This document shows, one piece after another, positions 788-7,843 of a DNA stretch of 64,000 nt (its first letter is position 1; the number at the start of each line of letters is the position of its first letter). This DNA is from Blastocystis sp. Blastoise. Its lineage: Eukaryota > Protista > Bigyra: Opalinata. Position numbers and translations under genes: made by a program. Location of the stretch: the NCBI GenBank assembly GCA_039096225.1, contig JBBPEB010000030.1:248001-312000 (forward strand), given 5' to 3'. The notes below the pieces were generated by a model. It was given only the letters and a program-made list of their open reading frames with translations. It was not told the DNA's origin and searched no databases.

Positions 788-3700
788 TTAATAACAATTA
801 AGTTGTCTTCCGTCACTATCATATTTTAATTGTTTATTAAGACTACGTTTGAAATCAGGATCATCAATAGAAAATAGTGGTTCTTTGATAGTAAGTATGA
901 CTTCATCTTCAAGATTTTCTTTAATATAGTCAATCATTGTTGTTGGAGACATTTTTTTGTCAGAATGGATATAGTAACGAAGTTAAAGAAATAAAAATGA
1001 TTTTTATATAAATAAATTATTAATTATTTATATTATAATAATATATATATGGAAAATAAGACTATATGATAGCAAATAGATTATAAAGGATATAATATAA
1101 GCATCATTAAGTTTATCAAAAGGATCATTTGATATAGTTTTACTAGTAAGAATACTATTTCTTAATGATTCAGTCACTAATGGATTATTACGAAAAGAGT
1201 AATCAAGTTAAAGAAGACTATATGATGTTGATATATATATGTTATAATTATTATTATTATGATTAATATGATTAAATTATTATAAATATAATTATAAATA
1301 ATAATAATAAAAATAGTGAAAAAAAAAATGAATAAAATTTTAAATATAAATAAAATAGTAAATAGAAAAAAAAGGATATATATTCTTTATAGTATCCATC
1401 AAATATTTTATCAAAGGTATTCATACATACAAAATGATTTAAGCCACATGTAAATATAGATTTAATAGATGTAGCATCATTCATAGAAGGATCTTCAGGA
1501 ATAAGTTGTAAGTTATATTGAATAGGATTTGCTATATTATGACGAGCATCACGATAATCTTGACGTATATAAGGGATTTCTTCAATTGAATCAGAAATAG
1601 GTTTTGTTTGAGAAGATATTTGTGTATTTTGAGGTAGAGATGGATCCATTCGTGGTCTTCTTGTATTTCTTCTTTGAGGAAGAGGAGGTAATGTGGGTTT
1701 TACACGTAATCTACGAGGTGTCTGTGTAACAAGTGAATTTGTTGTAGTTGTTGAAGGAGATGAAGATGATGATGAAGGAGTTATTGAAGGAGATGAAGAT
1801 GATGATGAAGGAGTTGTTGAAAGAGTTGTTGAAGGAGTTATTGAAGGAGTTGTTGAAGGAGTTATTGAAGGAGTTGTTGAAGGAGTTATTGAAGGAGTTA
1901 TTGAAGGAGTTATTGAAGGAGATGATGAATTCTCCAAAAATGGAGAATTATAAGAATATATTGAATAATAATGTCTAGCTATATATATAAATATTATAAA
2001 TTATATATAATAATGATATTTTCATAATAAATCATTATACTCATACTAAATATATTATTCTTATATTACAACATATTTCAAAAAAGAAAATAATAATAAT
2101 AATATACCTTCTTGTTCTTGGTCAATATCATCTATATTTAAATCAGTGACAATATGATCATGAATAGAAAGTTGTTGTTCTTGTTTCTTTTCCGTTCTAA
2201 TTACATATTTCTTTTGTTCGAAACATGTGAATTCAGGAAGAATTAAGATTCGTTCTAAACGTCTTGCAAGATACATCATTCTTTTTAATGCTTCAATTTG
2301 ATATACTATAAAAGGTATTAGAAAATAGCTTGTAATAAAAAGTCAATATAAAATATGAAATGCAAATATATATCTATATATATAATAAAATTCATGTAGA
2401 AAATATATTCAATATGAATATATGGAAATACCTTTAGATCCTTTATATTTATGTAACGTAAAAGTAATATATTTATTCTTTGAGTTCTGATAATAATCAT
2501 TTATTTGATTAAAGTAGTATCCTAATTCTTTAATTCGATATATTTTGGCATAAGATCCAACTATCCAATTATTATGTAATATAACACAATGCTTACCTAT
2601 ATATACATAGAATTCTATATGTATATAATAGTATAGTATATTTAATAACAATATAATAGTATAGTATATTTAATAATAATAGATATAATAAAAATAATAT
2701 AATATAATAAATATAATAAAATATAATAAAATATAATAAAAACAATAAAATATAATGAATATAATAAAATATATACAAGGAAGTTGATGTAAGAAATTAA
2801 AATGTTCAATATCAAAAAAGTCTTGTCCCGTGGGAAATCGACTGAAATCAAGTTCGCGAACAGATAGATGTTCAGGATATAATCTATAAATAGCTTCATT
2901 AAGAACTAATTGTTGTCTTAAAGTATGTGCTCTATATAAGTCCCATGATAAATATAAACATTGAAGAGTATTATAGGTAGGACGCAAATACCTATAAAGA
3001 GAAGATTATATATATAAATATATGAAAACTATACATATAAATAAAAAAAATTACTAATAGAATAATAAATTATGAACAATAAAATAATAATAAACAATTA
3101 TATACATGAATCCCGTATTAATTTCCTTAAATGGAGAATATAATTCCATTTGAACTGTAATATCATAATAATCATTCATATAATATAATGGGTTTTTAAA
3201 GAATATAATATCAACATCTGTAAATAATACTTTATACCCAAGAGAAAGACAATGAATAATGGCTAATGTTTTCATATTCACTTTATGAGCAAAAGATTGA
3301 TTACCGAACAGTGCGTCATCTTCATCTATTTTTATAGAACCAATATTTAATAAACTAGACTCAATTCCATATTCTAAAAGCTCCTATATATAATATATAT
3401 AACTTATTCTTTATAAAATATAAAATAAACAATATATAAAAATATAATTAGAGAAAACGAATATAGTATTTTATCAATTTACAAGATAGCAAACATGAAT
3501 AATATAATAATAATACTATACATAAATACATCATAACTCTCAACATCTAAAACAAAAGGTAAGAAATTTGTGATTTTTAAAGGAACAATACTACTATAAT
3601 AGAAATTCAGAAAATGATTTATATAAGAATGATCAAAAAAACAAATAATAATTTGATTTTGAATTGATTTCTTTGCTAATAATTCCTTTAGAGAATAATG

Positions 3701-4442
3701 AGGAAGTGGAATTGTATATTTAAAGCCTTCAGGTAAAAATACATTGTTCAATTCCAATTCTTCTGGATTCACTTTTATAGCAACATTCTTATAAGAATTA
3801 CTATATATTGTTTGTGTGTCTTTTACATCGTTATTCTTATCATTTGATTTCATATTTTGAGGAACTTTTTGATTCTTTTCCATAGCTTTCTTAAGTTCTA
3901 ATTGTTTTCGTTTCTCAATATCATCTTCACTTTCAAATGGAAGATAAGGAAATGTTTTGTGAATAAACTCAATCTTGTTCTCTTTCGCAGCTTTATCAAA
4001 TTCTTGATCTAATAATGATTTTCGTTTTCTTGTTCTTTTAAAACCAGGATCTGTACCTTGAATTTGACGATAATTCCTATTTTATGAATATATTATTATT
4101 TCATATACTTTAATTATATATTTCCAGCTAATCATATACTTTATATTATCAAGAATCTGACCAGTTCCAGAATCATCATATACTAAAGGATAATCTTGAC
4201 TATTCTCATAAATTGTATTTTTAATTACTATGTCTCTATCACTCACTAGTTTCTTTGGTAAATTACTTGATGTATATTGATGAGTTAACAATGACTATTT
4301 TCATTAAATGATATTAAAAATTACATACATTTTGCCTTAACATAAGTATAGATGAACATAGAAGATACAGTGCAAGTAGAACAGCTAATATCTCCAACTT
4401 CATGATAAAATTGTTAGAAATAGAATACATAAATAAGTTCAT
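788..4442 (-). CDS. Nucleotide-diphospho-sugar transferase (GT77-like, XEG113/RRA-related), type II membrane protein, 10 exons
   Basis: Spliced ORF has an N-terminal anchor (LEILAVLLALYLLCSSILML), a DxD motif in KVLFTDVDIIFFKNP, INTGFMYLRPT, VILHNNWIVGSYAKIYRIKELG, RILILPEFTC...FTCGLNH...YKEYSFRNNP, and stop TAA at 790-788. It has seven GT-AG introns and two AT-AC introns. An alternative start ATG lies at 4403. Confidence 0.85.
974..1093 (-). other. U12-type (minor spliceosome) AT-AC intron, 120 nt
   Basis: 5' end ATATCCTTT; branch-site TTCTTTAAC (990-982); 3' end TTAC. Removal joins DAYI|YIHSDKK in frame to the stop codon. Confidence 0.9.
1199..1379 (-). other. U12-type AT-AC intron, 181 nt
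   Basis: 5' end ATATCCTTT; branch-site TTCTTTAAC (1215-1207); 3' end TTAC. Removal restores KEY|SFRNNP, matching the family-type RE[HY]SFLxNP motif. Confidence 0.92.
1748..1925 (-). repeat. Coding 12-nt tandem repeat encoding PSIT/PSTT and poly-Ser (mucin-like)
   Basis: GAAGGAGTT(A/G)TT units on the + strand; translation SPSITPSITPSITPSTT... Confidence 0.9.
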
Positions 4443-7069: not shown

Positions 7070-7843
7070 TTTCAATGATATAAAAATATAAACTAGTATA
7101 GAACAAAAAATAAAATGAATTAAACTTATAAAGAAAAATATTATGGAAAAAGTGAAGAAACTGGTTCACTTTGAAACAGATTTCACGATTATTCTTTTTT
7201 ATTATTTTTAGTCACATATTCACGAAAATCAGTTTTTACAATTCAATAGAAACAAGAATTGCGGTTTCCAATATTTGTGTTTCCGAGAAACAAATAAAAG
7301 TTCTCATTCTGTGTACCGTATTTATTCTCCAAATAATAGGGAAACATTTGTTTTTTCCATGGATATAGAGTTGTTGGGGAATTTGTTTCATAATTTTGAG
7401 AGTATAACATTTGATATTTATTTTAAAGCTTCTTTTTTTGTATACGTTGATTTTTTAATTTTATTATGATTGTATTCTATAGGAGACGTAGTACTTATTT
7501 GTTTATAGTCAATAAATGAGCATTTTATTCTCAAAAAAAATAGATATTGATTATTCCATAAAAGTATTCGTATATTGTTGAAACTGTATTTTCTATGAAC
7601 CAATCACAGGACAGTACAAAGAAGACAGAGATTTCCACGGTTATCTTGATAAATCAAGTCATTTTTTTAGATTTCTATTTTGGATAGAAACCTTTAGTGT
7701 CATGCTAGTTTCGTATCAAATATTTTTTAACTGAATATTTCTCTTTGAATAGAAGAGTATCTACATAAATATTTGGTTGGTATGTTATACTTATCGATAA
7801 CTAACTGGTTTATAGATTGATTTTTCCATATATTGTTTTTTTC

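Follow-up and report, generated by a model that had tools for sequence, protein, structure and literature searches.

Gene structure at the locus

The window, i.e., the whole stretch of 64,000 nucleotides that was analysed, had a G+C content of about 21 % all along. On its minus strand, reading and three-frame translation delimited a gene for a GT77-like, type-II-anchored glycosyltransferase at positions 788..4403, the outer limits being approximate. The gene comprised ten exons, which were separated by seven GT-AG introns and, at the 3' end, by two AT-AC introns, referred to as A and B in the following. A hydrophobic N-terminal anchor was present in the translation of the gene start. The PF03407 domain was split over several exons, and the family assignment was obtained by exon-by-exon searches: exon 3383-3102 matched PF03407 (Nucleotid_trans, Pfam) with a score of 47.1 bits, well over the cut-off of 22 bits, in an alignment to positions 35-118 of the 208 profile positions. 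The affiliation to the glycosyltransferases, already proposed in an initial annotation from the sequence, was thereby supported. Pfam searches with exons 7-10 matched no family. Similar to the GT77 or PF03407 glycosyltransferases are the one exon above the cut-off and the visible N-terminal anchor; different is the intron-bearing C-terminal region of about 160 residues, for which neither a Pfam family nor a relative among 1.84 billion representative proteins was obtained. Two sequencing runs contained fractions of 0.43 and 0.14 of the words of the gene.

The last three exons surround the AT-AC introns. Exon 8 (1380..1978, minus strand) was an open frame with a complete final codon at 1380 and encoded a repeat stretch rich in Ser, Thr and Pro and, after it, a conserved block of 60 residues. 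Positions 1979-2014 belong to the GT-AG intron preceding this exon. Exon 9 (1094..1198, minus strand) had a length of 105 nt, corresponding to 35 codons with phase 0 at both ends, and was open in one frame only, while 3 and 11 stops occurred in the others. Exon 10 (788..973, minus strand) contributed 61 codons, open from 973 to 791, and the stop codon at 790-788. Since the last codon of exon 8 is complete and exons 9 and 10 are open in that frame, both introns are in phase 0 and their removal restores the frame; the three open coding pieces are joined around the 105-nt exon, as initially described. Without splicing, translation into intron A reached a stop at 1274-1272 after 35 codons, and an in-frame stop was present within intron B, too.

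Signals of the two AT-AC introns

U12-type AT-AC introns are characterized by the 5' consensus [A/G]TATCCTT, starting at the first intron base, and by a box like TCCTTAAC, whose branch A precedes the 3' splice site by about 10-15 nt; a polypyrimidine tract is unnecessary. Intron A (1199..1379, 181 nt, minus strand, phase 0) started with ATATCCTTT at 1379-1371 and had the branch box TTCTTTAAC at 1215-1207, followed by 6 nt and the terminal AC at 1200-1199. Intron B (974..1093, 120 nt, minus strand, phase 0) presented the same arrangement, with ATATCCTTT at 1093-1085, TTCTTTAAC at 990-982, a spacing of 6 nt and AC at 975-974. A re-reading of the minus strand thus reproduced exactly the coordinates and shared motifs of the initial annotation, and all sequence features of the proposed U12-type AT-AC identity were found in both introns. 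The 5' ends agreed with the extended U12 splice-site consensus, and the branch-site box TTCTTTAAC was identical to the consensus TCCTTAAC in seven of eight positions in either intron. With 8 nt left between the box and the end of the intron, the branch A is at -10 or -11.

Neither GT nor GC was present at or near either 5' boundary, hence no major-type splice yields the conserved junctions. The only nearby AG preceded the AC of intron A by 19 nt, a distance by which its use would displace the frame. Given the lack of a 5' GT or GC and the frame-shifting AG, only the AT-AC junctions lead to the conserved product.

The frequency of the motifs was compared with chance expectation. Within the window, ATATCCTT occurred nine times, with 9.45 occurrences expected from shuffled sequences, and TTCTTTAAC four times, with 1.18 expected. 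A loose composite of both signals (ATATCYTT .. YTTAAC, N4-12, AC) matched twice in the window, at introns A and B, while dinucleotide-shuffled sequences had 2.99 matches on average. A narrow composite had four matches across the 33-Mb genome and five in the reversed control. Taken by themselves, the splice motifs have the frequency expected by chance in DNA of 21 % G+C and are not significant. Because U12-like strings are cheap in DNA so rich in A and T, the weight of the case lies on position and conservation: above chance is the exact, frame-restoring placement in combination with the conservation in a paralogue.

A paralogous gene on contig C21

The exon-by-exon search of the own genome revealed a single second copy of the gene, located on contig C21. 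Exons 3 to 10 were all colinear with this copy, at protein identities of 48-86 %, and the GT-AG introns of the copy were found at corresponding places. The comparison of intron positions with a paralogue, which the initial annotation had suggested, disclosed AT-AC introns in the C21 copy at the identical two codon boundaries. The counterpart of intron A (L005 1255-1323, 69 nt) began with ATATCTTTT and ended with TTTTTAAC, five bases and AC. It was followed by a middle exon of exactly 105 nt (L005 1324-1428) and by the counterpart of intron B (L005 1429-1500, 72 nt), which began with ATATCCTTT and ended with ACCTTAAC, eight bases and AC.

In the DNA alignment, the exons of both copies corresponded base for base at 63-74 % identity. 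The introns aligned at the splice signals only, and the intron lengths differed by 112 nt (181 versus 69 nt) and 48 nt (120 versus 72 nt). On the protein level, the identity to the paralogue was 60 % both for the last 60 residues of exon 8 and for exon 9, compared to 56 % over the 61 residues of exon 10, and the stop codon of exon 10 was in the same position in both copies. The differences at codon positions 1/2/3 amounted to 16/9/21 in the exon 8 end, 11/10/18 in exon 9 and 21/9/29 in exon 10. Thus, the third position had the most differences in all three exons and the second position the fewest, the latter clearly in the exon 8 end and in exon 10. The remaining two frames of the three exons contained stops in both copies. 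Taken together, the alignment presents the classical signature of coding-constrained exons that are split by freely drifting introns with maintained signals. Both introns of the C21 copy were multiples of three and stop-free, resulting in a continuous open frame of 219 codons.

RNAs of the minor spliceosome

The genome (33.34 Mb, 34 contigs) was searched for the small nuclear RNAs of the minor spliceosome, with the Rfam cut-offs as thresholds. U6atac (63.8 bits) and U11 (62.9 bits) were above their cut-offs. U12 was recovered in full length with 46.8 bits, below the Rfam gathering cut-off of 53, and possessed the canonical branch-site-binding box in its 5' part. The branch box TTCTTTAAC departs from TCCTTAAC by one exchange of C to T, which leads to a G-U pair with the U12 box of this genome. 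For U4atac, a candidate on contig C8 was missed at the default threshold; it was of full length and had 29.7 bits, under the Rfam gathering threshold. This candidate contained a k-turn and an Sm site. The duplex of its 5' end with U6atac had a predicted energy of -28.9 kcal/mol, whereas 500 shuffled sequences gave a mean of -10.7 and a best value of -21.5, and its sequence changes were complementary to those of the U6atac of this genome, i.e., the two RNAs covaried. All four minor snRNAs are taken as present in the genome. The initial annotation had named the lack of these RNAs as an argument against its U12 reading, and with U11, U12, U6atac and the candidate U4atac at hand no such lack exists.

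Several observations count against the U12 reading. They include the chance-level frequency of the splice motifs, the U12 and U4atac scores below the Rfam gathering thresholds, and the C-terminal region, for which no homologue from another genome was retrieved, hence no uninterrupted relative across the junctions. Furthermore, the single-copy U6atac had a divergent 5'-splice-site-binding box, GAGCCGAGAGA in place of the consensus GAAAGGAGAGA, and this box is mismatched to the canonical 5' splice sites of introns A and B. A second, canonical copy of U6atac was not found in the genome.

Proposed splicing of introns A and B

Introns A and B are very probably genuine U12-type AT-AC introns of the minor spliceosome in a Blastocystis GT77-like gene, as judged from the signals, the frame, the paralogue and the snRNAs together. 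We infer that the RNA is cut at these junctions, and by the minor spliceosome. If the general knowledge on this system is applied, U11 would pair with the 5' splice site ATATCCTTT, and the canonical GAGUAAGGAAA box of U12 would pair with TTCTTTAAC, including the one G-U pair at the departure from TCCTTAAC. U4atac and U6atac would join next. Intron A would be released by cuts behind the codon at 1380 and ahead of 1198, intron B by cuts behind the codon at 1094 and ahead of 973, and the product would be an in-frame fusion of exons 8, 9 (105 nt) and 10.

An alternative use of the same splice sites was considered, in which exon 9 is skipped by a junction of 1380 to 973, as a regulated in-frame isoform, and the introns of the paralogue are perhaps partly retained as coding sequence. 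The skipping is suggested by exon 9 itself, with its 105 nt and its two phase-0 boundaries, the retention by the stop-free paralogue introns with lengths in multiples of three and their frame of 219 codons. The argument is, however, purely structural. Exon 9 is conserved at the protein level, which indicates its normal inclusion, and the peptides encoded by the introns are not conserved between the two copies. We regard this alternative use as unlikely.

We consider it very unlikely that the major spliceosome removes the segments or that other junctions are used. U2-type AT-AC introns are rare, but present in other eukaryotes, and the AG in intron A offers another 3' end. The 5' ends of both introns, however, fit the long U12 consensus and not the U2-type, each intron has a U12-type branch box at the characteristic distance of 10-11 nt to its 3' end, and the 5' boundaries are devoid of GT and GC. 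The minor snRNAs are all present, and the use of the upstream AG would cost the reading frame by its shift of 19 nt. It is equally hard to believe that the motifs are accidental and that the gene simply reads past 1379 to the stop at 1274-1272, ending in a hydrophobic tail with the downstream exons not being part of it: the chance-level frequency of the splice motifs in this DNA and the 35 open codons of the read-through would allow for it, but exons 9 and 10 are conserved in frame in the paralogue, with 56-60 % of the residues identical, an excess of differences in third codon positions and a common stop codon, either copy has the same four splice signals at matching codon boundaries, and the read-through peptide is not conserved, the corresponding segment of the paralogue being 69 nt of unrelated sequence.

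Age and origin of the intron pair

The preferred reading of A and B as minor introns allows an estimate of their age relative to the duplication. Since the C21 copy has both introns at the same codon boundaries, the AT-AC pair is older than the duplication, the products of which have 48-86 % protein identity today. On this reading, both introns were in place before this gene duplication within the lineage. Afterwards, the interiors drifted freely while splice signals and positions were kept, and intron A has swollen with AT-rich low-complexity DNA since the duplication.

The initial annotation offered gain or unusual retention as explanations; the pair may represent either, as the C-terminal region has no detectable relatives and provides no outgroup. 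A search with the 204-codon open frame of the paralogue, from the exon 8 end to exon 10 with introns included, retrieved no relatives from 1.84 billion representative proteins. The ESM Atlas provided nothing usable for the C-terminal region, and two metagenome scans, one with the exon 8 end and one with the exon of the glycosyltransferase domain, yielded no relatives.

The ends of introns A and B were alike beyond the consensus, with 15 of 22 and 20 of 31 matching positions, values that about 2.5 % of composition-matched offsets attained in either case. Between the ends of introns A or B and those of the introns of the paralogue, no comparable likeness was seen. The likeness of A and B is a weak hint that one intron may have been seeded from the other. 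A creation of both introns de novo within the Blastocystis lineage, one maybe seeded from the other, is conceivable, though we consider it rather doubtful. To our knowledge, almost no evidence for minor-intron gain has emerged from pan-eukaryotic surveys; if true, the de novo origin would represent one of few concrete cases.

The interior of intron A, an AT-rich low-complexity sequence, matched more than 150 places throughout the genome on both strands. An origin of intron A from an introner or mobile element was rejected, since the matches occur on both strands, the interior is of low complexity and the splice ends are excluded from the matches.

Comparison with other Blastocystis genomes and with animal genes

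A genus-specific 18S barcoding primer for Blastocystis had three matches in the genome, with one mismatch each, and none in the control. The primer matches were about 14.3 kb apart on contig C27 and within full-length eukaryotic SSU rRNA genes, which assigns the genome to Blastocystis.

For Blastocystis ST1, 346 U12 introns in 319 genes are reported, along with the complete set of snRNAs and proteins of the minor type (Gentekaki et al. 2017, PMC5608401). These numbers imply that some genes of ST1 carry more than one U12 intron. For Blastocystis, a pan-eukaryotic survey reported 253 minor introns, 77 % of them AT-AC and 49 % in phase 0 (ST1) (Larue and Roy 2023, PMC10639083), and a fast turnover of minor introns within Blastocystis (PMC10639083). 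The initial annotation had started from the premises that minor introns are rare, usually single in a gene and less commonly of the AT-AC subtype; these premises are inapplicable to Blastocystis (PMC5608401, PMC10639083), where an adjacent phase-0 AT-AC pair is much less unusual than had been assumed. The introns described here share with the published Blastocystis U12 introns the 5' consensus, the branch box near the 3' end, the AT-AC termini and phase 0, and the genome shares with ST1 the presence of all four minor snRNAs. An AT-AC minor intron in phase 0 is the typical kind for the genus, and the pair fits the published picture of Blastocystis without surprise.

Differences concern the length, the branch box and the arrangement. 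The published mean in ST1 is about 42 nt, whereas introns A and B have 181 and 120 nt and their counterparts in the paralogue 69 and 72 nt. Tortoise isolates of Blastocystis have long introns, a low GC content and ordinary stop codons (PMC12129017); introns A and B, three to four times the ST1 average, fit the longer introns of these isolates. U12 introns are not mentioned in the genome paper on the tortoise isolates (PMC12129017). In contrast to the published Blastocystis introns, A and B have an AT-shifted branch box, TTCTTTAAC, and are immediate neighbours. Particular to this pair are thus the direct neighbourhood, the lengths over the ST1 average and the absence of U12 introns from the paper on the tortoise genomes.

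Several U12-type introns per gene are present in the voltage-gated sodium and calcium channel genes of animals. The glycosyltransferase gene resembles these channel genes in having more than one minor intron, at positions that were kept across paralogues after duplication. In the animal channel genes, major introns usually lie between the minor ones, and GT-AG and AT-AC types are mixed; here, in contrast, two AT-AC introns surround a single exon in a protist gene.

The locus adds a dated data point: a deeply branching, AT-rich Blastocystis lineage kept two neighbouring AT-AC introns in place when the gene was duplicated, and their interiors have expanded and diverged meanwhile, while the turnover of minor introns in the genus is reported to be fast. 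It could help to test a recent gain of the phase-0, AT-AC-rich minor introns of Blastocystis, a question that it is insufficient to settle alone.

Consequences for gene models

The read-through ends 35 codons into intron A, which makes the truncation by GT-AG-only gene finders, expected in the initial annotation, plausible. Gene models limited to GT-AG and GC-AG introns would mis-end the gene inside intron A. For the C21 paralogue, models with the same limitation would read through both in-frame introns and add 47 spurious residues to the protein.

AT-AC introns of the GT77-like gene and its paralogue

In the paralogue of the GT77-like gene on contig C21 of the Blastocystis genome (locus L005), AT-AC introns occupy L005:1255-1323 and 1429-1500, at the same two codon boundaries as introns A and B of the window. 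Both paralogue introns have a length divisible by three and contain no stop codon, therefore the region forms a single open frame of 219 codons. A gene finder would translate through both introns and thus append 47 unconserved residues to the predicted protein.

Intron A (window 1379..1199, minus strand) exceeds the corresponding paralogue intron by 112 nt, an excess formed by its AT-rich low-complexity interior (window 1225-1345), which has more than 150 matching places across the genome, on both strands and with 72-87 % identity. Introns A and B (window 1093..974, minus strand) resemble each other at both ends further than the splice consensus (window 1064-1094 versus 1350-1380; 973-1020 versus 1198-1245), with weak statistics of about 2.5 % for each end under a composition-matched null; a 13-nt string, ATCATATAGTCTT, is common to the two. 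The upstream exon 8 contains a Ser/Thr/Pro-rich tandem repeat of SPSITPS-like units (window 1740-1930, minus strand), located after the transferase part and before the conserved C-terminal block. This repeat is absent from the paralogue, in which the flanking conserved blocks are only about 318 nt apart.

Minor spliceosomal RNAs

The single-copy U6atac gene is located on the minus strand of C21 (L002:1501-1617, C21:544821-544937). It presents GAGCCGAGAGAAGG at the site where the Rfam consensus has GAAAGGAGAGAAGG, thus the box that usually pairs with positions +6/+7 of the 5' splice site is altered. Despite this alteration, the AT-AC introns examined retain the canonical ATATCCTTT. A U4atac candidate was located on the minus strand of contig C8 (L009:1501-1635, C8:151033-151167); it was not picked up by the Rfam scan of the genome at default settings, and its score of 29.7 bits is far under the Rfam threshold of 53 bits. 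Both a k-turn and an Sm site are present in the candidate, and the complementarity between its 5' end and the U6atac of this genome is nearly perfect.

Further genomic observations

Two identical 77-nt stretches (C15:697477-697553 and C28:232679-232755), each with the composite ATATCCTTT ... CTTTAAC ... AC, may represent an AT-AC intron of a duplicated gene. Near the start of contig C27, the 18S rRNA genes, at positions 7508, 22056 and 36221, are repeated in tandem about every 14.3 kb.
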